Assembly: GCA_002104905.1 (NCBI GenBank)
Contig: MCFE01000191.1
Span: 1-64,000 of the forward strand
Length of the DNA stretch: 64,000 bases
Source: Basidiobolus meristosporus CBS 931.73
Lineage: Eukaryota; Fungi; Basidiobolomycota
Reading direction: 5' to 3'
In this document: positions 260 through 60,448 of the stretch, piece by piece
Layout of the letters: every line of letters starts with the position of its first letter
Numbering within the stretch: the stretch's first letter is position 1
Notes under the pieces: generated by a model
The model's input: only the letters and a program-made list of their open reading frames with translations
Told to the model about the DNA's origin: nothing
Database searches by the model: none
Position numbers and translations under genes: made by a program

Positions 260-3200
260 ATGGCGCAATCCATTCCCCAGATATGCCACCCCTTATCTGC
301 TGCCCAGACAGAGATTTGGGTAGCGCAACAGTTGAACCCTGAAAGTGCTGTCTACAATATAGCCCAGTTCATTGAAATCCCGGGCACCATTGATGCTGTG
401 TTATTCGAGGAGGCATTGCGGCAAGTACTAATGGAGGCTGAGGCTATGCGACTCCAGTTCATTGAAGATGAAGCTGGTGTTAGACAGTTTGTTGGTCCAT
501 TGAACTGGTCATTACCCCTGATTGATACCAGCGCCGACCCCAATCCTCAAGCAGCTGCTGAAGCCTGGATGAGGGCTGATTGTCAAAGGCCACTGAATCT
601 TCGACAAGGCCATAAGTTTAGATATGCTTTGCTGAAGGTCGACACCTGTCGATATATTTGGTATCAATGTGTTCATCATATCTTGATAGATGGTTATAGC
701 GGTGCACTAATTGCACAACGTGCTGCTCAAGTATACAGTGCACTGGTGAGTCACACTACAACAGAATGCCTTATGAGACCGTTCGCACATCTCCTACAAA
801 GCGATACGAACTATCGAGCTTCGGCTCAATTTACCGAAGACCAAGAGTACTGGCTTAGTCACTGCAAAGATTGGCCTGAGGCAGTGACACTATCAGGAAA
901 AACTGCCCTAGCTTTACATCAGCCAATACGCCAGACAACCGTATTTTCCTCTCAGCTCGTTCCTACCTATGCTTCGGACCCTCGTCACTTCACGTACGTT
1001 GTGATAGCCGCTATAGCGACATATCTTCACCGTTGGACAGGTGCTCAAGAGGTATCCTTAGGCTTCCCAGCTAAAGCCCGATTTGGTGAGGACCGCCGCA
1101 TCCCTGGCATGGCAGCCAATGTGTTGCCTATTCGAGTTATCATACAGCCAGACACCACCTTTTCGCAATTAGCTGATCAGGTAGCATACGAGATTCGGGG
1201 CGGATTGAGACATCAGCGCTACCGGTGTGAGGAGTTAAAGCGAGAACCTCGATTTGGGCGAAGCCAACCCTTATTTGGACCCACGATCAATTTTATGCCG
1301 TTCGATTATAACTTGGCATTTGGTCAATATTTGTCCACAAACCACAACCTCCTTAACGGACCTATTGATGATCTGGCGATCAGTGTGTATACAGGATCTA
1401 ATGACTCTCCTTTACGAATCGATTTCGACGCCAACCCGATACTGTATACAAGTGCTGACCTGATGGCACATCAACGGCGTATTCTGGACCTACTGGATAT
1501 CCTTGTCTCAAACCCTTCTCAGCCAGTAGCCAGCATGAACATTATCAGCGCCTGTGAGAAAAGACAACTAATGGATTGGAATGATACCGCTATGCCATAT
1601 CCTGAACATCTATGTATCCACCAGCTTTTCGAAGAGCAGGTTGCACGCGCTCCCGATGCCACTGCCCTCGTGTATGCAGATCAGGTCTTAAGCTATGCTG
1701 CATTGAACGCGCGCGCCAATTGTCTCGCGCATCAACTCATCGAGCTGGGTGTTCGACCCGATCAACGTGTGGCAATCTGTGTGGAACGCTCGCCAGCGCT
1801 GATTGTGGGCCTGCTGGCCATTCTGAAGGCTGGCGGTGCCTACGTGCCTCTCGACCCAACCTACCCGACGGAGAGGCTAATGCACATTCTTACCGATGCG
1901 GCACCATCTATCCTGTTGGCTGATGAATGTGGACGCAACGCTCTGGGCGAGTCGGCACTCTCCTTCTTGACAGTGCTGGACCCAAACACCCCATCTGGGT
2001 TGGTTACCAGTAATCCATGTATCAATGGATTGACCTCCCACCACCTCGTCTATGTGATTTACACCTCTGGATCTACTGGTACTCCGAAGGGTGTGATGAT
2101 TGAGCATCATGGTTTGTCCAGTCTGTGCACATGGCACAACAGCACCTTTGATGTTCACATTGGTTCTAAGACCACCCTGAATGCCGGAGTGGCATTTGAT
2201 GCCAGTGCATGGGAGATTTGGCCTACTTTGATTAGCGGTGCCACACTTGTTATCCCTGACCCTTCAATTGCTCATAATATACCCGCTCTACTGAAATGGT
2301 GGAGTGATCAGAATTGTGATGTATCCTTTCTGGTCACACCTCTTGCTGTTATGGCTCTATGGGAGAATCAAACTCCCACAAGCTTGCGCTTTTTGTTGAC
2401 TGGTGGAGATCGCCTACCGCGTTTACCGGAATCACTAACCTCTGGACTGGCGATCGTGAACAATTATGGTCCTACCGAGACTACTATTGTCGCCACATCT
2501 GGAATAGTAAAACTCGACGGTGGCCCATCTCATATTGGTAGACCAATCGCCAATACACGTATTTATCTACTAGATATCAACGGTCATCCCGTCCCATTAG
2601 GAGCGATGGGTGAAATACACATCGGCGGAGTAGGCGTAGCTCGTGGTTACCTGAACCGCCCAGAGTTGACAGCAGAACGCTTCTTACCAGATCCATTTAG
2701 TAGGGCCGAAGGTGCTCGCATGTACAAGACTGGTGACATGGCGCGCTACCTACCAGATGGCAATCTTGAGTTCGTAGGTCGTAATGACTTCCAGGTCAAG
2801 ATCCGCGGATATCGAATCGAAGTGACCGAGATCGAGGCACATCTTGTTGAACATCCCATGGTAAAAGAGGCGGTGGTTCTGGCCCTAGGTGAAGAGAGCA
2901 ACAAGCGACTGGTTGCATACGTTGTTGCTGATCCTGTTGAACACCTCGCCAACTCCCTGCGCTCATACTTGGCACCAAGATTACCCGATTATATGCTGCC
3001 TGCCGCCTTTGTGCGTCTGGATACTTTTCCGCTTTCCTTCAATGGTAAGCTGGATCGCCGAGCACTCCCGGCTCCCGGAACAGAAGCATTTGTTCATCAA
3101 GCTTACGAAGCCCCACGAGGTGAGGTCGAAATAATACTCGCAACAATATGGGCTGAATTGTTAGGCTTAGAACGCGTCAGTCGCCATGACAACTTCTTTG

Positions 3201-14986: not shown

Positions 14987-16869
<1,883 letters not shown>

Positions 16870-17898
16870 CTTTCGTTCACTCAATCAAAGCTATTCAATA
16901 AAGCGTGTTGGCCTGAGTTTCTGATTGTTCTTCCTGAGGTGGGTGGGGTAGAAATGGTCGGTGAATACAAGTACAAGATGTTGCGGTGGGAGCGATGATG
17001 CTGTATGCGTATGACTTGAGCGAGAGAAAGAATATTGCTGTGGGTAAAGTATGATCTAAGGTATCAATTTCGCTTTAACGTCTATTTTGACAACTAGGAG
17101 TCTTCACAATGGGACATGATGACAGTTACAGAAAGGTTGAGTTAGTGGAAAATTTTGTAGAGTTGGGGACTAACAAGTGTATCTAGTTTACCAGCAAGAG
17201 GATAGACAGCAACGGAGGCGAGGAGATATTATACCAAGAGGATATGGAGTACTGAGGGCCTTGGTAGAATTCAAGAGAGTGGCAAAGCAAAAGGCTTAGT
17301 AAACAAACATTAAACTACAATTTCAGCTGAGAAGCCTCACCCAACAGCAAGGGAGTTTGTACGAATTCGTAAACTACTTGGCACACGATGAATTAATTTG
17401 GGCATATCTCAACTGGATTATATTGAATACTAAAATCTCGATGATTTCGGAAAAAACCACCACATTGTGCCCGCATTGACTAGGATTGCCCACCACACAT
17501 CAATGGGCCAATCGCAGACGTGCTGAAATACCAAATCCCGAAACTTGGTTGAGTCGAGGGCACTACAAACATAGATAATCAGGTTGCAGCAGGATGGTTG
17601 TGAGTGGTATTTATAGATAGCATCAAGGGAGCATCAAGAGAGCATAATGGAATCCACTGTTCAACAATGTCATTGATTATTGAGCGCGGAGAAAAGGAAG
17701 ATTATATCTTGGGATGGGCTAGAAATTCCATGGTGTTCTCAGAAGTTACCGGCAATTGTAACCACAACACGACATAATGGTACAACATCCTTTAACGGAT
17801 ATCGGGGATTACTTCCAAATCCATAAAATGGGCCATGCCAACGTTGATCATCCCGCGTTAACCTAGCCCTCCCAACGCTTCCCTTTAATCCCCCTAAG

Positions 17899-19939
17899 AT
17901 GAATACTTCCAAGTTAAAATTAACCTTGCTAGCTAGCCTAATATGTAGTCTGATCCACGTAAACCCCACACTACAAGCTCGACAGCTCGATCCATGTGCC
18001 ACTCTAGCACGTAGCATAGAGGATTTCCTAACCCACGACACAGTTTTAGCATGCTATAAGAACATCCCATTTGTGAACAGTGTAAGAGAGCAGACAGTGG
18101 CGAATCTAGCGAAGGCCCTTCAATTCTACGTCTTTAAGGATGTTGCCAAGGAGGGTGCACAGGGGGTGGATCTGAAGAAGGAATTAGAGGATATAGCCAT
18201 GGCAGAGTTCCTGAATGATTTCCAGTTCCAACAGAGAGTTCAGAAAATCTTCACACCATTGAACGACGGTCATGTGTGGTATCAGCCAAAGTGCTATCGT
18301 AGCATGAACTTTATCCAGGCCTTTCCGTTAACCTCGTATGTGGATTCTGCTGGTGACCAGCGGGTCTACATACTAGATCAGCCTGTATTCCGACAGGGCC
18401 TATACAACAAAGTCAGGGAGGTCACGGGGGTCAACGTTCAGAATTTTCTGGGAATGGAGGTGACGGAGATCGATGGAGTACCTGTTCTAGAGGCGTTGCA
18501 GCGATTTGCCGATGAGGAGCTGGGAAAAACAAAAGATCCCCAGCAGCGATTTGAAATGCTACTTGCCAATCACGCCTTGACCTCGTACGGACAGTGGAGA
18601 AGTTTCTTTGGATACTGGGCCTCACCAGGCATAGTCCCAGATAAGTCCAATGTCACCTACACACTCCAGTCTCCTCGCCATGGCTCCCTCAAAGTAACCA
18701 TCCCCTGGATTGCCATCCCACAAATTTCGCTAAAGAGTTTCTGGAGCACATTTGGGTACAAAAGGCTGTATTGCGATCCGGATCCTACCAGCCCATACGG
18801 GATGGAGTTTTTGAACCCCTCCACCTTGGGCCTCCTACCGGAACCAGGGCCTGGTCAATCCGATACGGAGAGCCTGTCGACTACCTACAGTAGCTATCCG
18901 ACTTTGTTAAACAATCCGCTAGTCAATACCAACCCATTGAAGTTCTACCAGCTTGATGGGAACACCGGGGTCTTGGTATTGCCAACATTTTCGCTTGGGG
19001 ACCAGTTCACCTACGATAGCTTTGATTCCGCCATGGACCAGGGGCTTGAAAAATTTAGACGACTTGGAATACGAAAGCTAATCCTGGTAAGTGTGATACG
19101 GCGAGCCGTTGGACAAATGATGGGTTCTAACCGTTATCTAGGACTTCACAAATAATCCTGGTGGATCGATCTGCCTTGGCTACAAGCTGCTGAACCATCT
19201 ATTCCCTCAGATCCCTCGCCAGCAACTTTATTATCACTCAGACTTGGTCCGCTCCCCACTGTCGATGGAGCTCGCGAAACGCAATTCCCTCTGGCAATGT
19301 TCTAATTACTACAATCCTGACGAAAACAGCCTGCACAAAGGGCTCTCTTGTATGTTCCCTGGCACCACGTATATCAGAGGCGGCGAGCAAGCCAACTTCA
19401 CCCAGAAATTGCAATACAATTGTGATTTCCAAGTTAACCGAAGGATCAACCGCAAGCCATGGTTTCAGACAAAAGATGTGGCGATCGTAACCAACGGAAG
19501 ATGTGCGTCAACATGCTCCTCAGTCTCCAAGTAGGTCATTTCTGGTGATTCGGACGGTCATCGCCTAACCACCAATCTCCTCGTTTCCAGCTTCCTACAA
19601 CGGGTCATGAAAGTTCGCACGTTTGTGACTTCACCGTTCCCCAAAGGCACCAATCCGCCCATCAGCACAGCACCAGGCGGGATGGTATTTTCCTACGACA
19701 ATCTGTTATGGCAGATCACTGAAGCCGGACTCAGCAGCAGAGAGGATGCGCCTAAGAATTTTCCACAGAAAGCGGATTTTTATTTCACCGTCATGGAGAA
19801 CTATGGCTGGAATACCAGCTTACCCGACGAGTACGCTCAAAGGCCCGCCACGGACAGGATAGTTTTGGACGAAAGCAATTTCTTTAGTCCAGTCGAGGTA
19901 TGGACGGAGATTTCGCAAAAGCTGAACTACAGCAAATAA
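17899..19939 (+). CDS. Secreted S41-family (tail-specific/CPAF-like) serine peptidase, 2 introns
   Basis: Signal peptide; LNDGHVWY; VTEIDGVP; GVLVLPTF; spliced ILDFTNNPGGSICLG; VAIVTNGRCASTCS. Confidence 0.75.
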
Positions 19940-20130
19940 TGAGCAACTGTGCTGTGGGTAAGCAAATAACAAGTAACCGCGCTGTGTGAAAGAATACCAT
20001 TATTTAGTTAACCGCTTCGCTATCTGTATATACGAAACCATGTAAATAAACCAATCATCGTTCATTGATATGCTGGCTATTCAGTATTGTTTAGTGTGAT
20101 CATTGCTGTTGAACAGAAGAGACATATACA

Positions 20131-21554
20131 TCAGGTTGAGCTGCCGTCCAGATACTGGACCGCTGTAGCGGCTCGGGATAGAACAGCAAGCATCCAATTG
20201 GGAAGGGGCATTACATTATGGTACTGCTTATACGCCTCGGTGAAATGATTAGTATCAAACCGTAGAGTTGCCTCCACCAAACTCTGTGCATGCTCGTTAG
20301 AAAAGAGGACGAGAACGTGAAGCGTACGTACAACTTACATTGATCAGCCGGTACTCATCAGAGTCGAGAAAGCTTGGATATGTGAGGCCATACTCTTTGT
20401 AGGCTATGCTAACTCGCGTCCATTCTTCCAGGGCTACCATACATATACATGCCTGGAACAAGAAGCCTCGGACTTTATACGTTAGCATTGGATCATCTAC
20501 CGACAACTTGCACAGCTCTTCGAACCACGGGATTGCTTCGTCGTAATGACCTATCTGCGCCGCTAGCTCAGCCTGGTGAATTAATGAATACTTGAAGAAG
20601 CTAACAAATTCAATTTGCTCTTAGTACGCTTCATGCTGTCAATGCAGTACATGATCTGCCCATTACCCACTGTTTGCCGTTCGAAACAACTCGGTAGCTT
20701 TCTTGTAGGCATCCAAATGCCATTACAAGCTCGGTCTTCTTCTGCTTTCCGGCGTTTGCTTTTTCGTAATACTCCCCGATTTTTTCATAAAGCTTCCCGG
20801 TACGATTAGGATCTTTTTTGGTAGAATCGAACACAGTGGCTGCATCTTTCAAGGCCTGTAACGCCTTGTCTGTTTAGGGAGGGTGAGTGTCTATCCTGTG
20901 AAAAATCCATACTGCGAATCAACCAACCTGAATATTTGGTGTGTTTGTAAGCGTTGTATGCTTCTTCGAAACAAATGGCTGCCTCCCGGGTGCTAAGATC
21001 ATCCCCTATTTTCATGAAAGCTTCGCCAGCTTCCTGAAACCGGGACCCCGCCTCTTTGTCTGGAAAGCAGGAGACTGAGTCAGAAACGTCTGCGCACAAT
21101 TGAGTTTAAGTGAATGAGTACATTTCTTCTTCGATAGGGCATCTTTGGCCTTGTCTCTAGCGTCACTTCCAAGCCTACTATAATCCAAACCGTCATTTCG
21201 CGAGGAGCCTGCCACAGGTGCGGGTGTGACTTTGACTTCACTGGCCTCAGATATCAAGCTCCATCTGTTTAGGTAGCCAAGATAGATCGCGCTGCCATCT
21301 TTTAGCTTCACCACACTGAAAAGTTGGTAATTTTTCCAAGTGAAATCTAAGCTAGAACGCTGCCCCCGCGCCTTAGCTTTGGCTTGGGCAGCAAAATTCT
21401 TTATCCAGATGGCACCGTATGAGGCCTTGCCGCCCTCCTCCTGGAGCTGGGAGTATCTTTGTGTAATAAATGTGCGGAATGAGTCAGGGCTAGGCTTAGT
21501 TACGTAGAATAGGTAAAATACGAGTACAAGCAGAAGGGAGATAAGTAGGAGCAT
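20131..21554 (-). CDS. N-terminal transmembrane anchor plus small domain fused to an alpha-SNAP (Sec17)-like TPR domain; one apparent +1 frameshift near 20715
   Basis: Intron 21060-21121 joins LSKKKY to KEAGSRFQEAGEAFM; later AELAAQIGHYDEAIPWFEE, LTYKVRGFLFQACIC, YPSFLDSDEYRLIN then SLVEA, LPNWMLAVL; stop at 20131-20133. Confidence 0.78.
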
Positions 21555-21916
21555 ATCAAGGACAAAATCAACTATGCGGAGTGAAGGCGGAAGGTAGTGA
21601 AGCGTCGCGAGGATTAATGGTTGCTAGAAAAAGGAGACTGGGAAATTCAGGAAGGAGTGTCATCCTGGGCATTGATTGTGCATCTACGCAGCGTTGATGC
21701 AGCACATTATACTACAGAAGATCGTTCTGATCCGTAACAACCATCAATGAGACGTCATCCAAATTTGATTACTGCTCTCTGGAATAATCAATCGTCACAA
21801 AAATGCATCGATAGAACCATCCTCATAATTCCCCCGTTCCCAGCCCCCAATTCACAATAATTATTAACTCAAACGCTACTCACCTATCCATACCTCTTGT
21901 CTCTTGAAACGTACAT

Positions 21917-24900
21917 ATGAGTGAGACTTTGAAAGACGTGCCCGAGCTATTTGAGAACGAACTCAAAGAGTCGTTGAACGCCAGAACCGATGGGTTAGGT
22001 TGGTACTGCCCATAGACTGTGTATGTATATTCCTGTCTATCCAATATCCTAACCACCTCCAATCTAGCTTCTTACAAAGAGCTTGGTCCGCCAGATCTCT
22101 GCCATTTGACCAAATCTTCCGGGAAGCAGGGCGTCAAGGAGGTAAGCAATTTGTTTATGGTTGCATGCAACGCACTGCATTCTTGACGCGTTTCGGCTGT
22201 TCACGGATTATACTGACGTTTCGATGGTTGATGTATTTTTGCATTTGCAATGGTAGATTGGATCCTATCATCACATATTAGGAATAGATGCATCCTCTTC
22301 AGCCAGTCTCGCGGCCTACATCAATTCCTTAACATACTCCATGGTAGGTGACGACTGCATGCAGTATCCCCCAATTCCATCGGCACACTGAACAACTCTT
22401 CCTTAGGATGATCCCCACGGATGGTTCAGCAAGGGGGCAGCTTGGAAGATTAGTTCCGGAGTTTATTGGTAGGGAGAAATATTCATGACGTTGTAGTGCA
22501 GTTCGTATAACTCGTGTTTTCACCTACGGCAGTTGCTATAATGCATTTTCTCGAGTGGATGTACGCGTCGAGGTGAATATTCCTGGTGGGGTGTCTAGCT
22601 ACGTAGTAAACCACAAAGGAGAAAAGTAAGAACTCGTATGATACCGGATTTTCATAGCAAGTGACTGACATCGAGCATTGTTTGGAATTCTACAGAATAG
22701 AGGCAAGGCCAGAGATTTGGCATGAGACGCATATCTCGTCGATTCTTCGGTCATTCCTTTATTCAGATGACGAAAACTACCGACTCCTAGGATTGAGGAA
22801 GATCGACCCCGTCTCGAATCTCAACGCTGAGAAGCGGTTTCTGGAATCCGCCGAACAGGTGTTTTTCAAAGGTTTGCAAGACTACAGGGCCCTCAACTGT
22901 CGAGCCATCGCCAATTGATATTTGTATGCGGAATAGGATGGCAACTTGGAAGCGACCCCATAATCCAGGTGGCTACCAATATCCACAACCACCTTGTGGA
23001 TGGCCTGATGAAATATTTCAGCCAGAGCTCTCGCTTTGAAACCGCCGCCAATTTCTTTGAAAAACATATCCTTGCAGTTATTTTTTCACTTGGCTCTCTT
23101 ACACCCAATGCTATTTGCTGGTCCTTAACTCTTCACACTCTATACAAGAGACCCTGAAGTGACCGCCCTTCTAGCCCGCGCATACTTTGGAATGGGTAAA
23201 TGATTCGATTCGTGGAACGTATACCTCAACAACTTTGCTAAATGCGCCACCATTCTGCAGACGAGGAAATCAAAGGTGTAAAGGCTCTTCACCAAGCTCT
23301 GAAGAAGAACAGCATGAGCTACCCACTCCTGCACGTGCAGGCGGATTTCTTGCTGAAAAAGGTAAGACAAGGATGCCAGTCTTCCGAGTCATTCTCCTGC
23401 TAATATGCGGAATTCAGAAAAAAATGGAGACTGCCTTGCAGTTGGCGAAACAAGCGGTGAATAGCGCGCCCTCCGAATTCATCACCTGGGCCAAGTTAAC
23501 GGAGATTTATATCGATATGGACGACTTCAAATCAGTAATGACGGTTGTATCACCAGCTCCGATATCCCCGATCTAACCGACATCCTTCTAGGCTTTGTTA
23601 ACACTGAACTCGTGTCCGATGTTTACATACACTGATCGGGATTTCCCTCGTATGCCGCAGCCAATGAAAGTTCATCTGCCTGCTAGATTCGAAGGGAACT
23701 TTGGTCTTGGCCCAGAAGAGGATAGCGAGAAGGAATCAGAAGTAAGCGGTATCTGCATCTGTTGCTCACTTCGATGCACTAATTCATATGATAACTGCAG
23801 GTTCAGTCTGCCCTTGCTAGACTTCCCGCTCCTTCTTTGAGAGGCACCTTCGCCGTTGCGTACAACATCCTTACCCTTTTGGTCTCTAAAGTTGGTTGGG
23901 ATGAGCTTTTGAGATGCAGATCCAATGTATTCGTAATGGAAGAGGAATACCGTCTTCAAAAGGCCCAGGAAGAGCAGGTCCACGAACCTGAAGGTGAGGA
24001 CGAGAATGAAGATGACAATACGCCACTTGGTGTGATTCAAAAACAAAGCAGCAAGGAGGAAGAAGTTCCGGTCGAAAATGAGGAAGTAGAGGAGAAAGCC
24101 AATGTGCAGCCAACACCAGACAGCCAGTTGGAGAAACTCGATGAACAAGCGTTAGAAACTGTTCCTGAGGTGACCCCCACAAACATCACCCCGTCTGACT
24201 TAGTAACCGAAGAGGTTAGCACTCATAATGAAGAGTCAGAAGAAAAGGAGATCGACACCAAGGAAGATTCGGTTGCGGATCAAATGGAAAGCATTAGTCT
24301 CAACGATACGTTGACGGATGCGCTGCCTAATCAAAAGAAGGGCGATGAACCAGAAGTTAAGAAATCCCTCGAGACTACTTCTATTGAAAAGGAGAAGGCT
24401 GAAACTGATGGTACCACTGCCGAAGACATGGCGGTAGAGAAAAAATCAATTGAAAGCGCGACTACGCGTGTAGAGAATATCCCACCCTCGATGTCCGCTC
24501 GCAAAGACAGTAACCAATCTGAGAAGGTAGGTACGATCCATTCAATCCGGACTGAGCTGTATACTGACTCTTGCAAAAGACAGAGCAAGATAGAAGAGAA
24601 TTCATCACCAACTTTAGTAATAAGAGACTATGCGAAAGGTAATGTGGATACATATTGATCAACCCATCAGTAGTCACTAAACCCCGACTTGTGAAACGTC
24701 TAGATGGCTGGACAATCTATTTATGGTTTTGTACGAGGCAAGTGGTAATCTAATATGTAGTAGTGTGAATGCGTAACCCTAATACCTGAACAGGATTTGA
24801 GAGCGTATACGGCCTGGAGGGCAGAAGCGTCACATATCAAAGCTCAGCACTTGACCTATTCGAAGACTGGCGCTGAGTGGGAAACACTTGGTGATTTAGG

Positions 24901-25366
24901 CCTTAGACTTCATCACAAGGTATGTAGGAAAGTTGCACAGCCCGCCTCCTGCTCAGTCCACTAACTCACCTGTAGGAAGAGGCGAAAGAAGCATACCAGC
25001 GATGCTTACACAACAAGTTCTCCGCAAAGGCCTGGCTCAAACTGATGAAAATCTACGCTGATGAGGACAACCTTCAGCAAGCACTCACAGCCATAGTCCA
25101 GCTCTCCGTACACAATGACAGATGGTACAATGATGTCGTGGTAAGTTGATGCTTTATAAATCCGAGATGCCGGTTGATTCTAATCTGTATCGCTACAGTA
25201 CCCATCCCCAGTTGCAGACGTGTTGAACCACCTCATCAAGAATCATGGCCTATCGAAGGTCCAAAACGTTTTGATCTCCATGAATCTTCCTGCACCAGTC
25301 TACAAAATAGTAACCCGGTACTTTGCCCACGCTGAGCTGTTCAAAATAGACGGGTCCGAGTGGTAG
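21917..25366 (+). CDS. Exomer cargo-recognition subunit (ChAPs family; Bch1/Bud7/Chs6 like), many introns
   Basis: MSETLKDVPELFENELKESLNART; ELGPPDLC; WHETHISSILRS; LTLNSCPMFTY; WDELLRCRSNVFVMEEEY; C-terminus YFAHAELFKIDGSEW*. Confidence 0.88.
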
Positions 25367-42427: not shown

Positions 42428-44171
42428 ATGAATTTCGTAGGTGTTGACGTTGGCACTGGGTCGGCCCGCGCTGTGGTGGTCGACGAAAAGGGGGAGCTTC
42501 TCGGGACAGGAGTGTATGAGCTCACCACCTGGAACGCTTCGACCCACTTTTACGAGCAGTCTTCAGAGAATATCTGGGCTTCCTGCTGCAAAGCGGTGAA
42601 GAAGGCCTTAGAGGAGGCGGCAGTTTCCCCCGACACCGTCAAAGGGCTTGGCTTTGACGCCACGTGCTCTCTGGTTGTCCTGGATGCGGACGGGAACCCG
42701 GTGTCTGTGTCCCCAGACACCACGGAGAAGGGAGACGAGAGAAACATTATTCTGTGGATGGACCATAGAGCGAAGGACCAGGCACAGAGGATTACCGAGA
42801 CCAAAAGTGAGGTGCTGAAATTCCTGGGGGGAACGATGTCACTGGAGATGGAGTTACCGAAGATCTTGTGGCTCAAGGAGAACAAGCCGGAGCTTTTCAA
42901 GAGAATGTACTTCTACGACCTGCCAGACTTTCTCACTTTCAAGGCGACCGGCTCCACTACTCGTTCCACTTGCTCCTTGGTGTTCAAATGGTTGTACATA
43001 CCCCCAGAAATTGCCGCAGATACTTCTATGACGAAAGCATGGCTGGGACGACCAGCTTTTTGACTTGATTGGTCTAGCGGACTTGAAGGAGAACGACTAC
43101 ACCCGTATCGGAGGGGTGCCTCAAAGAAATGGGCAGGTCCTGATCGCTGGCCAGAGGGTGGGTGGCCTTAGCGAGCAAGCAGCGAGACAGCTCGGGCTGA
43201 ACCCAGGGACAGCGGTTGGGTCGGCGGTGATTGATGCATATGCTGGATGGGTTGGGACAGTTGGAGCACCATTCACCACAAGGCCAGGTGATGTTGCGGC
43301 TGCCACGGATATCCAGGAGGCGCCCAAACGCCTTGCCCTGATTTGCGGCACATCATCTTGTCATCTGGTCACAAGCCCAGACGCCGTATTTGCCCAAGGG
43401 ATTTGGGGACCGTTTTATTCCTCTTGTCTGCCCACGTTGTGGATGAGCGGAGGTGGGCAAAGTGCGACAGGTAAGCTGATCGACTGGGTGATCGAGAACC
43501 ACAAAGCCTCCCGGGAAGCACGCGAGGAGGCTGCCGCTCAGAGTATCAGCGTTTATCAGTTCCTGAACCAACGACTGGAGCGGTTGAAAACGAAGCGGAA
43601 TGCCTCGAATCTCCCCTCGCTCACGAAGGACTACCACATGATTGCCGACTTCCATGGGAATCGATCACCATTGGCCGACCCAGCGCTTCGTGGAATGGTG
43701 GTTGGCCTGGATCTGGACCCACTGGGCGTTGACAGTCTTGCCCTTCAGTACTATGCCACCATGGAGGCTATCGCGTACAGTACTAAGCAAATCATCGAAG
43801 CACTGAACCAGAACGGGCACTCCGTGGACACCCTATTTATGTCAGGTGGTCTCTGCAAGAATGCAGTGTTTGTTCAGCTTCACGCGGACATCACCGGATC
43901 TCCGGTAGTGCTGCCAAAGTATATCAACAGTGCGGTTGTACTTGGGGCAGCGATCCTTGGGGCTACAGCCTACGGGAGTGGTCATGATAACCTATGGGAC
44001 ACGATGGTCAGCATGAACAAAGCAGACCAAGTGATCCATCCCACCGGAGACGAAGGGGAGCTAGCCATCCACCGACGAAAGTATGAAGTAATGAAACTGA
44101 TGCAACAGCACCAAAAAACGTACCACAGGATTATGTGCGGAAACGGTGGCGGCGGCGGTATCCTACCATAA
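42428..44171 (+). pseudogene. FGGY-family pentulose/ribulokinase copy A, +1 frameshift at about 43033 (or an assembly indel)
   Basis: FVGVDVGTGSARA; GLGFDATCSLV; IILWMDHRA; MSLEMELP; DFHGNRSP. Reads atgacgaaagcat where copy B has atgacaaagcat. Confidence 0.85.
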
Positions 44172-44858
44172 CGTGTGCATTCCACCCGATTCCACTCTTG
44201 GCATCCGGGCTGTCGGGACTCCCCTCGCCAATTTGGTGTGGACCCTTCGTGCGGCCGCTGTGGGCGAATTCGTGGATATGATATTCATCAGTTCGGTCAT
44301 TGTCAGGCAGGCCTCCATTTTGATCGAACTTATAGCTTCATGGTTTACCCAAGGCCAAAGCGCCATTACTATTTTTGATCCCAGGGTTGATATGGCAAGA
44401 GGTGTGTCTTGTGTACCTACGGATAGCTTGATGCATCCCAAACCACCCCATTGTTTCTCCAATTCGAATGCATTGATCAACAGACTCGCGAGATCAATTC
44501 CTGACATATCGACAGTGTGCTAAAGCTGCTGAAAGTGACGGCGGGTGCCTGGTGGTGATTGGGAATACCTAGAAGGAAGCAAAATTTTCCCTTGTTGGCA
44601 TGCCACATTTAATCAATATGATTCCACTTTCTAGGAGAGCCTTGTTGTGTTAATGATACGGGTGTCATCCCAAGAATTGGCCAAACCCTTATTAACTAAA
44701 TCTAAAGTTTCTGGTTGAATTGCATGGGAATGTTGTGGGAATCTTGGAGTATATATTAGAAGTGTCTGGGAGAGCTGGTAAATTGCTAGATTTCCATCAA
44801 TGCTTTGTTCAATGTAAGAGTAGCACTTCAACAGCTTTGAGAAATATGATATTCTGGG

Positions 44859-45069
44859 TGTTCTAAAAGTTTTGGAGATACTGAAAGTGATTGGGAGAAT
44901 AAGCAGATCTTGTGGTTTTCACTTGATCATCTGTTGAATGTAAAAGTGGTATTTATACTTTTGCATGATCTTGAAAAAGCAAGCCCATAGCATATGCTAA
45001 GAATGATCCCAAGAACATGTGTGCAAAGCTTGGGGGCTTTTGGACAGTTTTGATTATTCTATCACAACA
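44859..45069 (-). mobile_element. Degenerate, partly deleted solo LTR of the same copia family, inverted
   Basis: Reverse complement matches LTR segments (ttggagata...gtgattgggagaa...gtggttttcactt...cccaagaacatgtgtgcaaag). Confidence 0.7.
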
Positions 45070-45095
45070 ACAGGTGCTTGGGGTATGGTAATTAG

Positions 45096-48000
45096 TGTTG
45101 TAAAAATTCGTATTTCCACCTAAATACTCACCTAACTTAGTCACTTAGATCATTACCCTCAAATCCTAGAGAGTACTGACCAAATTCCTTGTTGGGATTT
45201 ACTTAGAATATTTACCCAGAACATGAAAATTTGATAAGTTGTCCAAACAGCCCCAAACTCTGCACACATGCTCTTGGGACCTTCCTTAACCTATTCTACA
45301 TGTTTGTAATGCCAAGACCAGGCAAAAGTATAAATACTACTTTTACATTCAATAAATCATTAAGTGAAAACCACATAATCTACTTGTTCTCCAAATCACT
45401 TCCAATATCTCCAAGACTCTTACAACAGGTTATGAGTCCCAAGCTGTCACTCTCTGCAATGTCTACTACTGCTATTACTGGAATTTTTCCCTCTGCTGAA
45501 AAGTTGGATGGATCTAACTACCAAGTGTGGAAGGTGAAGATGAAGATGCTGCTACAAGAAAGAGGCCTTTGGGATATTGTCATGGGAGAAGAGTGTCCTC
45601 CTAAAAACGTGGGAGAGGAAGCCTTAAAGTACCAGAAGAAAGAACAAAGTGCCTTTAACTGCATTTGCCTTAATGTCAAGAACAAATTGCTAATTCAATG
45701 CTCAAGAGCAAAAACGGCAAAAAATGCCTGGAAAGCATTGGAAGACACCTACCAGTCATGTTCGGCTGCCAAGAAAATGTATCTGAGAAGAAAATTCTTT
45801 ACTACAAAGATGCTGCCAGGAGAAGAAATGAAAAATCTAATTAACAGAATTACCCTGCTGGTAGATGAGATGGAATCTGTGGGCATACCAACTACTGATG
45901 AGGATGTGATAGTTACCATCCTGAATAGCCTGACAGACAAGCTTCAAGGCCTTGTATCAGCCCTAGAGTCCAGAACTGAAGATTTGACCTTAAATTACAT
46001 CTATGGAAGGCTCCTGGATGAAGAATTAAGAAAATCAAGCGCCAATAAGAAGGAAGAAGAAAATGCATTAATAAGCAATGATAACCAACAAAGGAGGTAC
46101 CCAAGACCCTACAAAGGCAACAGCAACCTATTTTGCAACTACTGCAAAAGGAAAGGACACACATCAGACCAGTGTTTCAAAAAGAGAGATTATCAGCAAA
46201 AGAAGCCTGAATATGGAAATGCTGCAACAACTGAAGATAGACTATTCATATCTGCACTAAATATGACCACAAACAGGGATTCTCAGATGTGGTATATTGA
46301 CTCTGGAGCTTTTCAACACTTTACACACCAAAAAGAACTTTTTACCCAATATCAAGAAATTCCAATTAAGAAGGTTTTCATGGGTGACAATAGAACCCTT
46401 GATGCAGTGGGAGAAGGAACTATCCAAGTAAACCTTAGAAGCAGTGAAGGAAGCCATACACTGACCTTTAAAGAAGTACTCTATGTACCAGAAATAGCCA
46501 AGAACCTACTCTCTGTAAGCAAGGCCACAGCAGAAGGACTCAGTTTCAGTTTTGACAATTCTGTATGCAGGATCACTAATCAAAATGGTGCCCATATTGC
46601 TTTGGGCATCAGAGATCAAAATCTATACAAGTTGACTTATATTCCATCATATCTGGAAGCCAATATAAGTAACTTAAATGAAGAAACACCAATGCTTTGG
46701 CACAGGAGATTTGGGCACATCAATTTTGATTATTTGCGTAAAATGATCAAAGATCAGCTAATTTCTGGAGTGAAAATTGATCCCCCAGCTAATTTGGAGC
46801 ACTGTGAAGCCTGCATATATGGGAAACAAGCCAGACAACCGTTCAAGAGCTCTGGGTTAATCAAAACTAAGAAAAAATTAGATCTAATTCACTCAGATCT
46901 GTGTGGACCTATGCAAAATTTATCCTTAGGTGGGATGAAGTATTTAATCACTTTTATTGATGATTATACAAGATACACATGGGTCTACTTCATGGAGAGG
47001 AAGGAAGAAGCTCTGTCTAAGCTCAGGGAGTTTAAAGCCATGGTGGAGAGAGAAACTGGTGAAAAAATCAAGAAAATACGCTCTGACAATGGTGGAGAAT
47101 ATACCTCAAAACTCTTCATCCACTTCTGCAAAATTCATGGGATAAAGCAAGAGACTACTGTACCTTACTCCCCACAGCAAAATGGAGTAGCAGAACAAGC
47201 TAACAGATCAATAATTGATATGGCAAGATCTATGATCCATGATCAAAAATTATCCTATGATTTTTGGGCGGAATCAGTTGCCACTGCTGTATACCTTAAA
47301 AATAGGAGTTATAACAGAATACTTTGTGATTCTACTCCATTTGAAGCATGGTATGGATACAGACCAAGTGCAGAACATCTAAGAATATTTGGGTGCACAG
47401 CATATGCCAAAAAACTGGTCGGAAATCAGTCAAAATTTGAGCCAAAAAGTGTACAATGCATATTTTTGGGCTACTGCAATGAGAGTAAGGCATACAGACT
47501 CTACAATACCAAAGCAAAGAAGCTTATCAAGTCCAGGGATGTGTTGTTTGATGAAAATTCAAAATTTTCACAAAAAATGACATCAGATGATGACAAAAAT
47601 TTGATCTCAAGTCCACCAAATTGTCAGGATTGAATCAGAGCAAAACAATGAGAATTTTTTCACTCCAGAGGACTCTAAAACCGTGGTTCAGCCAGAATCA
47701 GTGCCCAGGAATATCCCAGAAGTGATCATTCCAGTATCAAATGCCCGGAGATCCAATTGGACAAGAAATAGCCCATATTACTATATTAATGAGGGTACAA
47801 ACTTAGCCTATGCCTATTCAGTCCATATTGATGAGCCCCAGACTGTAAAAGAGGCCCTGAATAGCCCTCAGACAAAGTTTTGGAGATCTGCAATGACTGA
47901 GGAATATCAGGCCCTGATGGAAAATCAAACTTGGGACTTAGTCAAATTACCAATCAACCAAAAATCAATTGGATGCAGATGGGTCTTCAAGACAAAATAC

Positions 48001-49764
48001 AAGGCTGATGGTACAATTGAAAGATACAAAGCTAGACTTGTAGCCAAAGGATACTCTCAAACAAAAGGACTTGACTATACTGAGACCTTTGCACCGGTAG
48101 CCAAGTTTAATTCCATCAGATTAATATTGGCTATTGCAGCCAAATATAAGTTTTTTATTCATCAAATGGATGTAAAAACTGCATTTTTGAATGGAGAACT
48201 TGATGAGGATGTGTATATGAACCAGCCTGATGGGTTTGTTGACCAAGATAACCCCCATTTGGTCTGCAAGCTTAAAAAGTCACTATATGGTCTCAGACAA
48301 TCACCAAGAGCCTGGAATTGCAAGATAGATTCTTATTTGGAATTTTTGAGTTTCAAAAGAAGTAATGCTGACTATAGTATATACTATAAGCCAGATAGAG
48401 CAAATCCAGTTCTATTAGCTCTATATGTGGATGATCTTATTATAGCTGCCAATAACCTAGAAACATTGGAAGAGACTAAATCCAGCCTATCTAAGGAGTT
48501 TCAGATGTCCGATCTAGGAGAACTTAGTTACTACTTAGGGATTAAGTTCTCCATAGATAGAAGTACCCAGACCATCACCCTAAGCCAATCCAAGTATATT
48601 CAAGATATACTAAAGAAGTACAAAATGGAAGACTGTCAACCGGCAGCTACCCCAATGGAGACAAACCTTAACTTGGTCAAAACTCAACCAAATCAAGAGA
48701 GCTTGGTGCCATCTGAAAGCCCTGACTTTCCTTATCAATCTATAGTCGGCAGTCTGATGTATATCATGCTTGGAACACGTCCAGATATTGCATATTCAGT
48801 GGGAGTTGTCAGCCAACATAATCAGAACTATAGATCTGATCATATTGCAGCAGTTAAGTGGATTTTTAGATACCTAAAAGGAACTGCTGATATTTGCTTA
48901 AGATACACTTATAATGATTCAGAACAGGATCTTGTGGGATACTCTGATGCAGATTGGGGATGAAATTTGGAAGACAGAAGATCCACCACAGGATACACCT
49001 TTCTTTACTGTAAAGGAGCAATATCATGGAATTCAAGAAAGCAACCAACTGTAGCACTTTCTACTACAGAGGCAGAGTATATGGCAGCCTGTGAAGCTAC
49101 AAAAGAAGCAATGTGGTTAAGAAAGCTCTTTGCAGATTTAGGCCTATGTCAAAAAACGCCTATTACTTTATTTCAAGATAATCAAGGATGTATACAATTA
49201 GGTAGAAATCCAACTTTTCATGCTAGAACCAAGCACATAGATATTAGACATCATTTCATACGTGAAGCTATAGAGAATAACTTAGTTAGCTTAGTTTACT
49301 GTCCTACAGATGAAATGATTGCAGACATGTTTACCAAACCATTAGCTAGAGACAAGTTTGAATATCTTAGGTCAAAATTAGGACTAGTCAGTATGAACAT
49401 TTAGCTGAGTGGGAGTGTTGTAAAAATTTGTATTTCCACCTAAATATTCACCTAACTTAGTCACTTAGATCATTACCTTCAAATCCTAGAGAATACTGAC
49501 CAAATTCCTTGTCGGGATTTAATTAGAATATTTTCACCAAAATACCAGGTACCCAGAACATGAAAATTCTCAAAGTTGTCCAAACAGCCCCAAACTTTGC
49601 ACACATGTTCTTGGGACCTTCTTTAACCTATTCTATGTGTTTGTAATGCCAAGACCAGGCAAAAGTATAAATACTACTTTTACATTCAATAAATCATTAA
49701 GTGAAAACCACATAATCTACTTGTTCTCCAAATCACTTCCAATATCTCCAAGACTCTTACAACA
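45096..49764 (+). mobile_element. Full-length Ty1/copia LTR retrotransposon E1 (4669 bp): LTRs 45096-45427 and 49416-49764, TSD ATTAG
   Basis: TGTTG...CAACA termini; ATTAG at 45091-45095 and 49765-49769; PBS GGTTATGAGTCCC at 45428; PPT GAGTGGGAG at 49407-49415; gag-PR-IN-RT-RH order. Confidence 0.97.
45432..49404 (+). pseudogene. Copia gag-pol with two lesions: +1 A at about 47618 and in-frame TGA at 48961
   Basis: CNYCKRKGHTSDQC knuckle; WYIDSGA protease; HRRFGH...CEAC and IHSDLCGP, RSDNGGEY, QNGVAE integrase; LYVDDL RT; YSDADWG and [13 protein letters not shown] RNase H. Confidence 0.93.
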
Positions 49765-49865
49765 ATTAGTTGAGTAGATCCCAACAAAGACCCTATGAAA
49801 AATCTCAAAGTTGGATTTCATATGCTTTTCAGCTTGTATACAGCCAGTATTTGTATGATATTCTG

Positions 49866-50213
49866 TGTTGCATGAGTTTGGAGATATTGGAGGTGATTGG
49901 GAGAACAAGCAGATTATGTGACTTTCACCTAAGGATGTATTAAATGCAAAAGGGGTATTTATCCTTTTACATGGTTTTGGCAAAACAGGCACGTAGATAA
50001 TATTTAAAAAGATCCCAGGAATATGAGTGCAAGGTTTGGGGCAGTTTGGACTGCTTTGAGAAATTTCATGTTCTGGGTACCTGATGTTATGGTGAAAATA
50101 TTCTACGCAAATCCTGACAAGGAATTTGGACAGTATTGTCTAAGATTTGTAGGTAATGATCAAAGTGACCAAGTTAGGTGTATGTTTAGGTGGAATTACA
50201 AACTTTTACAACA
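49866..50213 (-). mobile_element. Complete solo LTR (348 bp) of a related subfamily, inverted
   Basis: tgttg...ttttacaaca termini; flanks TTCTG and TTTTG form a TSD with one transition; colinear with the reverse complement of the E1 LTR. Confidence 0.8.
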
Positions 50214-55489: not shown

Positions 55490-56350
55490 TTAATGTTTTC
55501 TTCTCCACACGCTGATCTTTTCCTTGCCCTCACGCCCTGCATGGCTCTTGCAGTCTTCCAGGGACTCTAGGTCGAAGGATTTCTCAAGCGCGGCCTTATA
55601 GGCATCCACCGAAACTGAGAATGGTGGGCCGCCTTCGTGTTGGTCTAACGGAAACATCAAGGCAATCAGGACGCCACCTGGTTGGATAATTTCCGCGTAG
55701 CGTTCACCCCACTGAGCTCGCATTTCTGGATCGATGGCGCAGAAAAACCTAGACGAAAGGTTAGTTCAAAGAAAGGGTGTATGGAGCTGATGCCTGGTGG
55801 CCACACATACGTATAGTCGTAGGCAAAGCCGAATTTCGTTGGGAACTTGTCAGTGAAGAAGTTCCCCAGTTCGAAAACCGGTTTCTTGCCTTGGGTGGCT
55901 TTCCCTTCCCAATACTGCAACCTGGTTAATCCTGAAGAAAGTTCGAGTGCTGTCCAAATCACCTACCTTGTTGGCGATCTCCACTGCGGACGGGCTGATG
56001 TCCAAGCCGACCGTCTCCCTATCAAACGAACAGAAATATGCGACGTCGTATCCCTAGAGGGCAAGGCTCTGCTTAGTTTCACCGAAGAGTATGTCCGCCT
56101 CCATTGTTTCCGTACCTTGCCACAGCCAGGAACTAACCCTTTCCCTTCGGGTAACTGAAACTTGCGTTCCTCGAGAAGCTGGACCAATGCAGGAGAGACC
56201 TTTCCAGCATCCCAACCAGTGGCTCCTTCTTTCCAACGGCGGTCCCAATCTAAGGAGGTACCGGTTACTTCAGTCAACTGCTCAAGTTCAAAGGAGAAGC
56301 AAACACTGACCTTCAAAGCGTTTGTCAGTGGTTTCGTTAGGGGCAGTCAT
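55490..56350 (-). CDS. SAM-dependent thiol/halide methyltransferase (TPMT/HOL1-like), multi-exon
   Basis: MTAPNETTDKRFE / DWDRRWKEGATGWDAGKVSP; LVPGCG; FAYDYT; LIALMFPLDQHEGGPPFSVS; REGKEKISVWRRKH*. Confidence 0.85.
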
Positions 56351-57304
56351 TTCAATCAACCAATGCCCGAAAATCTCGCCCATTAAATGGACTTTCCCCC
56401 AATTGGGCATTAGTCATCAAAGATCGGTGTGAAACATACCTTAGTAGTTCCGTAATCAATTTTCTCCGTTCGGCATTGCAGTCGTCACCAGACGCAACTC
56501 TTTGTGGCACCTCACGCTTCTCCCGTATGTCCAGGGTAGTATGCTGATTACCTATATTCAATCATGCTCAATACCTATGTATCCGCTACATGTGGCATGA
56601 CAACCATTCAATCCCTTGGAATATGGCATGCGATTTACCAAGAGTTCTCTCGAGTTCTACCCGCCTACCTTAATGTGGGAGGGGAGGAATATCTTATTTC
56701 CCAAATTGCCTTAACTGCTGCTAGCATTTCCTGGAGCGTAATTTGCCATTTGGGTGTTGCTGTTGAAAGAGCCACGTTGATTCCTTATTGGTTTTGATGA
56801 GATACATCTGTCCATTTCATCCGCAAAAGATCTAGCAATACCTATATATGTGGTACTTCAATGCATGTTTATTTGGAATGCTGGTACTGAGGTGATTTGG
56901 AAGTAATCAGGACAAGACCTATATTCATTTCCTGGCCAATAGAGTAAAAAGCAAGTGTCTGTATCTTGTGGAGATTGGAGAAATCACACAGCTCTGAAAG
57001 CATTGTCTCCTCAATAAATATCTTTTGTTGATTGCTTTGTATGCTGACTGTATTTATTGTTTTGTCAATATTACTAAGAATGTCATTTCACAAATCTATT
57101 AATCAATCCGATACTATACACAAATAGCTTGGGCAAATTACACTAAAGCCCAAAAGCTAGAACCAAAGTGACTAAGCTGAAGCAGTTTGATGGTATAAAT
57201 GTGAAGCCCACAAAACTCCCATTAGGCTTAACTTACATTTAAGCTAGGCCTACATGTTATCCAGGATATCTATTTTGTCTCCAGCTGATAGTTAGTGTGC
57301 ATAT

Positions 57305-60300
57305 TGTTATAAGAGTCTTGAAGATAATGAAAGTAAGTGGGAGGACAAGTAGATTATGTGGTTTTCACTTAATGATCAATTAAATGTAAAGGTGGTATTT
57401 ACATTTTTACATGGTCCTGGCAGAGCAAATGCATAAAGTTTGTCTAAGAAGGTCCCAGGAGCATGTGTTCAAAGCTTGGTTTGGTTTGAATAATCTTGAG
57501 AAATTTCATGCTCTTAGTACCTGATATTTTGGTGGAAATATTGAGAGTAAGTCCCCACAAAGAATTTGTTTAGAATTTTGTCCCCAATCAGCATCAGAGT
57601 ACCCCACAAGATCCTGTTCTGAATCCTTCTAAGTGTATCTTAAGCAGATATCAGCAGTTTGATTTAAGTTACTAAAAATCTGCTTAACTACTGCAATATG
57701 ATCAGATCCATAGTTCTGATTATGCTGGCTGACAACTCCCACTGAATATGAGATGTCTGAACATGTTCCAAGCATAAAATACATCAGACTGCCAACTATA
57801 TATTGATAAGGAAAGTCAGGGCTTTCAGATGGCACTAAACTCTCTTGATTTGGTTGTGTTATGACCAAGTTGAGGTTTGTGTCCATTGGGGTAGCTGCCA
57901 GTTTACAGTCTTCCATTTTGTGCTTCTTTAGTATATCTTGAATATACCTGGATTGGCTTAGGGTGATAGTCTGGGTACCTCTGTCTATGGAAAACTTTAT
58001 CCCTAAGTAGTAACTGAATTCTGCTAGATTGAACATCTTGAGCTCTTTAGATAGGCTGGATTTAGTCTCTTCCAATATTGCTAGATTACTGGTGGCTATA
58101 ATAAGATCATCCACATATAGAGCTAATAGAACTGAAATTGCTCTCTCTGGCTTATAGTAAATACTATAGTCAGCATTACTCCTTTTGAAACTCAAAGATT
58201 CCAAATATGAAGTTATCTTGCAATTCCAGGCTCTTGGTGATTGTTTGAGACCATATAAAGATTCTTTAGACTTGCAGACCAAATGCAGATTTTCTTAGTC
58301 AACAAGCCATCAGGCTGGTCCATATATACATCCTCATCAAGTTCTTCATTCAAAAATGCAGCTTTTACATCTAATTGATGTATTAAAACTTGTATTTGGC
58401 TGCAATAGCCAATATCAATCTGATGGAATTAAACTGGGCTTCTGGTGCAAAGGTCTCCGTATAGTCAGGTCCTTTTGTTGAAGAGTATTCTTTGGCCACA
58501 AGTCTTGCTTTGTATCTTTCAATTGAACCATCAGCCTTGTATTTTGTCTCAAAGACCCATCTGCATCCAACTGATTTTTGATTGATTGGTAATTTGACTA
58601 AGTCCCAGGTTTGATTTTCCATCAGGGCCTGATTTTCCTCAGTCATTGCAGATCTCCAAAACTTTGTCTGAGGGCTATTTAGGGCCTCTTTTACAGTCTG
58701 GTGCTCATCAATATGGACTGAATAGGCATAGGCTAAGTTTGAACCCTCATTGATAAAGTAATTTGGGCTATTTCTTGTCTGGTTAGATCTCCTGGCATTC
58801 AATACTGGAATGATCCATTCTGGGATATCCCTGGGCACTGATTCTGGCTGCAGCATGGTTGTAGAGTCCTCTAGAGTGAAAAAGTTTTCATTGTTTGCTC
58901 TGATTCAATCCTGACTATTAGTGGAACTTTAGATCAAATATATTTCATTATCTGATGTCATTGTTTGTGAAAATTTTGAATTTTCATCAAACAACACATC
59001 CCTGGACTTGATCAGCTACTTTGCTTTGGTACTGTAGAGTCTGTATGCCACACTCTCATTGAAGTAGCCCAAGATTATGCTTTTTATACTCTTTGGCTCA
59101 AATTTTGACTAATTTCCGGGCAGTTTTTTGGCATATGCTGTACACCCAAATATTCTTAGATGTTCTGCACTTGGTCTGTATCCACACCATGCTTCAAATG
59201 GAGTAGATTCACAAAGTAGTCCTTTATTACTCCAATATCTAAGGTATACAGCAATGGCAACTGCTTCTGCCCAAAAATCATAGAATAATTTTTGATCATG
59301 GTCATAGATCTTACCATATCAATAATTGATCTGTTTGCATGTTCAACTACTCCATTTCACTATGAGGAGTATGGTACAGTAGTCTCTTGGTTTATCCCAT
59401 GAATTTTGTAGAAGTGGATGAAGAGTTTTGAGGTATATTCTCCACTATTGTCAGAGCATATTTTCTTGATTTTTTCACCAGTTTCTCTCTCCACCATGGC
59501 TTTAAGCTCCCTGAGCTTAGACAGAGCTACTTTCTGTTCTCCCTATGAAGTAGACCCATGCGTATCTTGTATAATCATCAACAAAAGTGATTAAATACTT
59601 CATCCAGCCTAAGGATAAATTTTGCATAGGTCCACACAGATCTGAGTGAATTAGATCTAATTTATTCTTAGTTTTGACTAACCCAGTGCTCTTGAGCAGT
59701 TGTCTGGCTTGTTTCCCATATATGCAGGCTTCACAGTGTTCCAAATTAGCTAGGGGATCAATCTTTACTACAGGAATTAACTGGTCTTTGATCATTTTGC
59801 GCAAATAATCAAATTGATGTGTCCAAATCTCCTGTGCCAAAGCATTGATGTTTCTTCATTAAAGTTACTGATATTGGCTTCTTGATATGATGGAATATAA
59901 GTCAACTTGTATAGATTCTGATCTCTGATACCCAAAGCAATACAGGCACCATTTTGATCAGTGATCCTGCATCCAGAATTGTAAAAACTGGAACTGAGTC
60001 CTTCTGCTGTGGCCTTGCTTACAGATAGTAGGTTCTTAGCTATTTATGGAGCATAGAGTAATACTTTGAAGATCAGTGTATGGCTTCCTTCACTGCTTCT
60101 ATGGTTTAATTGGATAGTTCTTTCTCCCACTGCATCAAGTGGGCTATTGTCACCCATGAAAACCTTCTTAATTGGAATTTCTTGATACTGGGTAAAAGGT
60201 TCTTTTTGGTGTCCAAAGTGTTCAAATGCTCCAGAGTCAATATACAATGTCTGAGAATCCTTGTTTACGGTCATATTTAGTGCAGGTATGAATAGTATAT

Positions 60301-60448
60301 CTTCAGCTGTTGCAGCATTTCCATATTTAGGCTTCTTTTGCTGATTATCTCTCTTCTTGAAAAACCGGTCTGATGTGTGTCCTTTCCTTTTGCAGTAGTT
60401 GCAAAGCAGCTTACTGCTACCTTTGTAGGGTTTTGGGTACCTCCTTTG
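57305..60448 (-). mobile_element. Degenerate copia E2, inverted: partial LTR 57305 to about 57573 joined to broken RT-IN-PR fragments; interrupted at 60448 by E3
   Basis: Fragment ORFs with LYVDDL, RYKARLVAK, IHSDLCGP and CNYCKRKGH; many stops and frameshifts; RNase H missing at the LTR junction. Confidence 0.9.

Follow-up and report, generated by a model that had tools for sequence, protein, structure and literature searches.

A single five-exon gene occupies positions 20131-21554 on the minus strand of the window, the 64,000-nucleotide stretch of Basidiobolus meristosporus CBS 931.73 DNA that was analysed. The model is based on GT..AG splice sites and on comparison with relatives. All four introns (62, 58, 70 and 55 nt) have GT..AG borders and keep the reading frame. 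The start ATG at 21552-21554 is the first in-frame ATG past a stop located 22 codons upstream, and the stop codon is found at 20131-20133. The gene and its parts are listed below, with residue numbers referring to the encoded protein.

20131..21554, minus strand: whole coding region of the predicted membrane-anchored SNAP-like gene; 5 exons, 1179 nt of coding sequence, 392 residues
21554-21122, minus strand: exon 1; hydrophobic helix, N-domain, linker and first SNAP helix
21498..21554, minus strand: N-terminal hydrophobic helix, a predicted signal-anchor; residues 1-19, AF2 helix 2-18
21246..21497, minus strand: juxtamembrane alpha/beta domain (N-domain); residues 20-103, ~85 residues, two helices and four strands, AF2 pLDDT 69
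21183..21245, minus strand: linker; residues 104-124, pLDDT below 50, poorly conserved
21122..21182, minus strand: first SNAP helix, equivalent to helix alpha2 of alpha-SNAP; residues 125-144 plus the first base of a Tyr codon, AF2 helix 125-141 with pLDDT 87-92
21060..21121, minus strand: intron 1; 62 nt, phase 1, splits the conserved Tyr codon
20928..21059, minus strand: exon 2; SNAP helices
20870..20927, minus strand: intron 2; 58 nt, position common to metagenome contig L002 and Olpidium contig L005
20671..20869, minus strand: exon 3 as annotated; donor GTGGGT
20708..20710, minus strand: extra base compared with B. ranarum; GGATGCCTAC versus GGAT-ACTAT
20601..20670, minus strand: intron 3; 70 nt as annotated, 66 nt with the conserved donor
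20339..20600, minus strand: exon 4; best-conserved SNAP segment, PF14938 E 3.9e-13, alpha-SNAP E 5.5e-8
20284..20338, minus strand: intron 4; 55 nt, position common to L002
20131..20283, minus strand: exon 5 and stop; C-terminal SNAP bundle, tail without the acidic/Leu motif of alpha-SNAP

An earlier note on this DNA had proposed a clean 62-nt intron that connects exon 1 in frame with the SNAP-like part. Our model agrees and places this GT..AG intron at 21121-21060, ahead of exon 2. The three further introns (58, 70 and 55 nt) were absent from that note. The deposited version of the gene is GenBank ORX94946.1 (P0005), annotated as a "TPR-like protein". Its first 144 residues are 100% identical to the exon 1 translation. 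The entry is 402 residues long, and becomes the 392-residue model when a 10-residue insertion, VSDSVSCFPD, is removed. Hydropathy and this comparison were computed on the 392-residue model, whereas the homology searches and fold prediction used ORX94946.1, the B. ranarum protein and individual exons in its place. The insertion comes from an acceptor at 21090, which lies 30 nt earlier, shortens intron 1 to 32 nt and adds the ten residues. The B. ranarum ortholog has a 60-nt intron 1 and exons 1 and 2 of identical length. Neither this ortholog nor an intronless homologue (P0002, described below) contains the insertion. The 62-nt intron 1 is therefore the better model, and the acceptor choice in ORX94946.1 is probably wrong.

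Exon 3 contains one extra base compared with B. ranarum. The 13 codons past it, up to the end of the exon, are conserved (10/13) in the +1 frame only. The conserved donor GTAATG sits 4 nt past the annotated donor GTGGGT and would end exon 3 at 20667. The conserved donor would give an exon 3 of 203 nt, compared to 202 nt in B. ranarum, and would disrupt the frame. Use of GTGGGT keeps the annotated exon open, but 14 residues are then read in the non-conserved frame. On this comparison, the extra base appears to reflect an error in the assembly or, alternatively, a frameshift of recent origin, and because of it this copy of the gene may be damaged.

An S41-type peptidase gene at 17.9-19.9 kb is convergent with the SNAP-like gene. 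A gene for ChAPs, an exomer cargo adaptor, starts at ~22.2 kb and is divergent from it. Elsewhere in the window, the GC content dips to 0.37-0.42 at 44000-50000 and 56000-64000, compared to ~0.47 in the rest.

Conservation of the fusion

A phmmer search with exon 1 against 1.84 billion representatives returned four proteins (P0001-P0004). These are KAK9765434.1 from B. ranarum (P0001), a protein on a Logan contig (P0002), the partial protein KAG5460373.1 from Olpidium bornovanus (P0003) and a metagenome fragment (P0004). The gene for P0002 is a single intronless ORF of 1251 nt. Both P0001 and P0002 contain the hydrophobic helix, followed by the N-domain and a PF14938 SNAP domain (109.6 and 104.5 bits, respectively). 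A metagenome scan with P0006 identified two JGI contigs, L002 and L003, which stem from an AT-rich eukaryote (GC content 30-33%) and are related to P0004 and P0006. Both encode the N-domain followed by the SNAP part (tblastn E 2e-48 to P0001). Protein searches with P0002 or P0001 alone gave no new relatives, and no relative was found in a metagenome scan with the N-domain alignment. A protein profile search with an alignment of family members returned query members only and was swamped by low-complexity (poly-Ser) words. Across genomes, the architecture described in the earlier note was thus found in B. ranarum, Olpidium bornovanus, the Logan contig and the two metagenome contigs. At least four lineages besides B. 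meristosporus carry the fusion. It is rare: the collections searched yielded six such proteins or contigs, which represent about five lineages.

The gene structure is conserved as well. A phase-1 intron in L003 splits the same conserved Tyr codon as intron 1 in Basidiobolus, and L002 contains all four Basidiobolus intron positions and one extra. In Olpidium (L005), one exon encodes both the N-domain and the first SNAP helices, and an intron is found at the intron-2 position. The exon lengths are 433/132/202/262/153 nt in B. ranarum versus 433/132/203/262/153 nt here when the conserved intron-3 donor is used (199 nt for exon 3 as annotated). The surroundings are syntenic. Both the window at 16400-25350 and the B. 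ranarum contig JASJQH010000269.1 (L004) contain, in the same order, genes for a protein kinase, the S41 peptidase, the SNAP-like protein and ChAPs. The conservation of the fusion, of intron position and phase and of synteny in the relatives indicates a single gene rather than two.

Comparison of the two Basidiobolus species gives a dN of 0.14-0.20 and a saturated dS, for the N-domain and the SNAP part alike. Their introns align at 50-65% only. The dN/dS ratio is 0.35 in the linker and far lower elsewhere in the gene. Judged from these substitution patterns, the gene is under purifying selection.

Two further observations concern the relatives. In L003, a 105-residue ORF with hydrophobic glycine-rich stretches adjoins the SNAP-like gene (1075-1392, minus strand). 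In Olpidium, the first ~240 residues of KAG5460373.1 (L005 218-1160) have no family match and lie ahead of the Met at which the hydrophobic helix starts. On this GC-rich contig, the 5' end of the gene model is probably extended spuriously.

Domains of the protein

Residues 1-19 have a mean Kyte-Doolittle hydropathy of 2.68, and no other strongly hydrophobic segment is found in the protein. Consistent with the earlier note, exon 1 therefore encodes a hydrophobic N-terminal helix, followed by the region of ~110 residues that the note had quoted. The protein starts with Met and about 17 hydrophobic residues in five of five lineages, with P0002 taken from its internal Met31. Nothing precedes the helix. 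The flank past it carries a net charge of +2 in the B. meristosporus protein and is net positive in four of the five lineages. According to the positive-inside rule, this predicts that the C-terminal part is cytosolic, which fits a SNAP domain, whose partners are found in the cytosol. The most likely topology has the N-terminus out and the C-terminus in the cytosol.

The N-domain follows the hydrophobic helix. A conserved Y-x-T-N/K-P...F-R motif comes after the hydrophobic residues, and the two helices and four strands come next. In the family alignment, Y17, P21, F26, R27, Y76, F79, D86, G93, W98 and L100 are invariant. The earlier note had called this region DUF4359-like. Pfam gives this label no significant support here, as the protein has no match to DUF4359 (PF14271; cut-off 27 bits). 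Four weak lines of evidence do agree with it. The best-scoring member, P0002, reaches 16.2 bits (E 0.017), below the cut-off. Language-model features give DUF4359 with scores of 0.91 and 0.86 for two divergent members. In addition, the top Atlas shape match of the N-domain is a DUF4359 cluster, with TM of 0.56/0.52 over 87 residues for a model with pLDDT 69.

A similar signal is observed for Tim29 (PF10171). Three members match its Pfam profile with 12.5-14.7 bits (E 0.02-0.1), compared to a cut-off of 25 bits, and one match by language-model features falls on a Tim29 cluster. The top VIA-align match is residues 57-191 of 7cgp chain C, with a Z of 6.3 that is within the chance range of the tool; the next is 4.5. 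We take this chain to be Tim29, as the residue range fits the described transmembrane (TM) and IMS domain. The weak DUF4359/Tim29 signals span 21246-21554 in the window, P0002:31-142 and L002:54-371. A Foldseek search of the N-domain against the PDB gave no match. A sequence-profile match of the N-domain to S100-A16 in the PDB (E 0.38) was treated as noise. DUF7361, MNE1 and other sub-threshold Pfam matches were inconsistent between members and were discarded. A relationship of the N-domain to DUF4359/Tim29, being sub-threshold, is a lead only.

The SNAP similarity of the C-terminal part is far above what chance would give. Exon 4 alone matches PF14938 with an E-value of 3.9e-13 (49.9 bits, cut-off 25), and exon 5 is collinear on the profile. 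ORX94946.1 aligns to residues 61-288 of alpha-SNAP (E 3e-18) and to Sec17 (E 2e-12), and L003 matches each of the two with E about 1e-19. Gamma-SNAP was not among the sequence matches of either query. In P0001 and P0002 the PF14938 match starts at profile positions 32-47; in P0002 it begins at position 32, upstream of the intron-1 position. Residues 125-390 have a pLDDT of about 90 in the AF2 model of the B. ranarum ortholog, which shows the SNAP fold of helical hairpins in a twisted sheet with a helical bundle at the C-terminal end. The best 30 PDB matches in Foldseek are all Sec17/alpha-SNAP (E 1e-11 to 6e-8, target TM about 0.8). Gamma-SNAP (E 1e-6), HAP40 and generic TPR proteins are well behind. 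The identity to alpha-SNAP in these matches is about 20-22% only. By sequence profile and modelled fold, the C-terminal part is an alpha-type SNAP/Sec17 domain, as had been claimed from the translation. The PF14938 match and the Sec17/alpha-SNAP fold matches rule out a generic TPR protein.

Helix alpha1 and the apolar loop (F27/F28 in alpha-SNAP, F21/M22 in Sec17) have no counterpart, since the alignment starts at alpha-SNAP residue 61. The sequence ahead of the alpha2-equivalent helix consists of the linker, the N-domain and the hydrophobic helix. This bears out the earlier observation that the loop is missing and that a hydrophobic N-terminal segment and an extra domain are present instead.

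We examined the basic and aromatic residues of the concave SNARE-binding face using a residue list compiled from the literature (PMC12019078, PMC5540461). The picture is mixed. Relative to alpha-SNAP, K93, K122 and Y200 are identical in ORX94946.1, R116 is kept as K and K203 as R, and equivalents of D217 and E249 are also kept. Three positions are not conserved: K94 is H, and the two central lysines K163 and K167 are Y and H. Mutation of Sec17 K159/K163, which correspond to alpha-SNAP K163/K167, interferes with the SNARE interaction (PMC5540461). Further residues have changed as well. E252 is L, E253 is R and the tail D290-L294 is LDGS-S. The B. meristosporus protein ends with '...QYLDGSST' and lacks the acidic tail and the penultimate Leu. 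This Leu, L294 in alpha-SNAP (L291/L292 in Sec17), is needed for NSF stimulation (PMC5540461, PMC12019078). L002 and L003 end with '...EDLR', like alpha-SNAP, and P0002 ends with '...GIR'.

Because K163, K167, E252, E253 and the tail D290-L294 are not conserved, the canonical 20S function is doubtful in Basidiobolus. The residue states weaken the suggestion in the earlier note that the protein is a SNARE-disassembly adaptor there. L002 and L003 keep the EDLR tail, which suggests that the founding member of the family was probably a functional NSF adaptor, with later divergence in the Basidiobolus branch.

Proposed function and alternatives

A canonical SNAP relies on helix alpha1 and the apolar loop to keep its N-terminal end at the bilayer, beside the SNARE transmembrane anchors. 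Within the 20S complex, its N-terminus faces the membrane. We propose that the B. meristosporus protein is a single-pass, N-terminally anchored paralog of alpha-SNAP/Sec17 that resides on an organelle and binds or regulates SNAREs, a reading that we hold with moderate confidence. The TM helix and the juxtamembrane domain would replace helix alpha1 and the apolar loop, and a flexible linker of ~20 residues would connect them to the SNAP fold. An anchor at the N-terminus would preserve the usual orientation of SNAP while fixing the protein to one membrane. The anchored SNAP domain would then be locally concentrated on its home organelle, where it may bind SNARE bundles. Given the tail of L002 and L003, NSF/Sec18 was probably still recruited by the ancestral form, and the anchored SNAP would be NSF-coupled wherever that tail persists. 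The Basidiobolus form is more likely an NSF-independent binder or regulator of SNARE complexes, or one with weak coupling to Sec18.

Two alternatives concern the gene itself. Annotation could have wrongly joined adjacent genes for a small membrane protein and a truncated SNAP. We rejected this exceedingly improbable explanation on comparative evidence: the same fusion is encoded without introns in P0002, and both parts are located in one exon in Olpidium. Within the Basidiobolus gene, the first SNAP helix lies inside exon 1, the SNAP homology begins in exon 1, without a start of its own, and continues into exon 2, and the position and phase of intron 1 are conserved. The extra base in exon 3 raises a different concern. 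If it is real and the conserved donor is used, the frame is broken, and this copy would be a recently inactivated pseudogene whose function is carried by another copy. Conservation of the next 13 codons in the +1 frame only fits this possibility, as does the dependence of the annotated open frame on a donor 4 nt upstream of the conserved one. However, assembly errors can also take the form of a single-base indel, and the alternative donor GTGGGT is usable as a 5' splice site with the frame kept. The gene contains no further stops or frameshifts, and its dN/dS is far below 1 throughout. We consider inactivation unlikely.

The other two alternatives accept the gene and differ on the protein. Its hydrophobic stretch covers about 17 residues from residue 2 onwards, as expected if it were a cleaved signal peptide of a lumenal or secreted protein. 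However, no small-residue cleavage motif is found and the flank after the helix is net positive. The invariant Y17, P21, F26 and R27 just past the helix point to a structural role, and a SNAP domain with an NSF-binding tail, as in L002 and L003, has no lumenal partners. A cleaved signal peptide is very unlikely. It is also conceivable that the SNAP fold was repurposed as a membrane-anchored helical-repeat scaffold for a non-SNARE partner, outside the SNARE/NSF cycle. There is a precedent in the SNAP-like HAP40, which binds huntingtin and appears among the fold matches after the SNAPs. The low identity to alpha-SNAP and the loss of two central lysines and of the NSF-activating tail in Basidiobolus are in line with such a change. 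On the other hand, the SNARE-face positions K93, R116, K122, Y200 and K203 are kept, and attachment at the N-terminus keeps the geometry of SNAP on a cis-SNARE complex. The EDLR tail of the metagenome relatives makes sense only with NSF. We therefore regard repurposing as improbable and prefer an anchored SNARE binder or regulator.

Comparison with known SNAPs and related proteins

SNAPs are treated as soluble adaptors. Whether their loop acts as an anchor or as a bilayer-perturbing wedge has been debated from reconstitution with an artificial TM-Sec17. A natural SNAP with a predicted TM anchor in place of the loop would indicate that evolution has used the anchor-only design and kept it in several early-diverging fungal lineages. 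The family also offers variants with and without the NSF-activating tail.

The earlier note knew of no natural SNAP with this architecture. Our literature searches agree: we found no description of a natural membrane-anchored SNAP, and the only account of such a design that we found concerns a laboratory construct. GenBank nonetheless already contained this protein and its ortholog under generic names. Nothing was found in the literature on the function of DUF4359 or on PF14938 architectures.

A wider scenario is possible, though we put it forward only tentatively. Integral-membrane alpha-SNAPs may form an old family of fungi, possibly of a wider group, that has largely disappeared and in which a Tim29/DUF4359-type anchor replaced the loop. 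Each would be its organelle's own SNARE chaperone, coupled to NSF in some lineages and uncoupled in Basidiobolus. If this is true, the family is a natural test of the SNAP loop as a mere membrane anchor, and Tim29, so far regarded as restricted to Holozoa, gains relatives in fungi and bacteria.

The closest known proteins are alpha-SNAP and Sec17, whose fold is shared between helix alpha2 and the C-terminal bundle. The EDLR tail is shared with the metagenome relatives and several concave-face residues are shared with the Basidiobolus protein. Unlike these soluble proteins, the Basidiobolus protein is predicted to be integral to the membrane. It lacks helix alpha1 and the loop, and has gained a TM helix, a domain of ~85 residues and a linker. 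Gamma-SNAP shares the superfamily fold, but its match is weaker (Foldseek E 1e-6 versus 1e-11). Additional alpha-type copies with separate localisation or function are also known from Giardia (PMC6172762) and Leishmania (PMC12019078), where comparisons of the extra alpha-SNAPs used the hydrophobic loop, which is conserved, and the C-terminal Leu. According to PMC12019078, opisthokonts have just one alpha-SNAP, and fungi are counted among them. The putative paralog would contradict this statement.

The bacterial DUF4359 (PF14271) and Tim29 (PF10171), a subunit of human TIM22, resemble the N-terminal module, as predicted here, in having an N-terminal TM helix followed by a small alpha/beta domain, but no N-domain match reaches a curated threshold. 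Tim29 has been reported to have no homologues outside Holozoa (PMC7523481). The relationship, if confirmed, bears on the origin of this animal mitochondrial import subunit.

The engineered TM-Sec17 (Song et al. 2017, eLife) is similar in carrying a transmembrane anchor at the SNAP N-terminus. It stimulates proteoliposome fusion, and the apolarity of its loop is dispensable when the SNAREs zipper fully (PMC5540461). This laboratory construct retains full-length Sec17, with its loop and LL tail. In the natural protein, by contrast, the loop region is deleted, a folded domain is added and, in Basidiobolus, the tail is absent.
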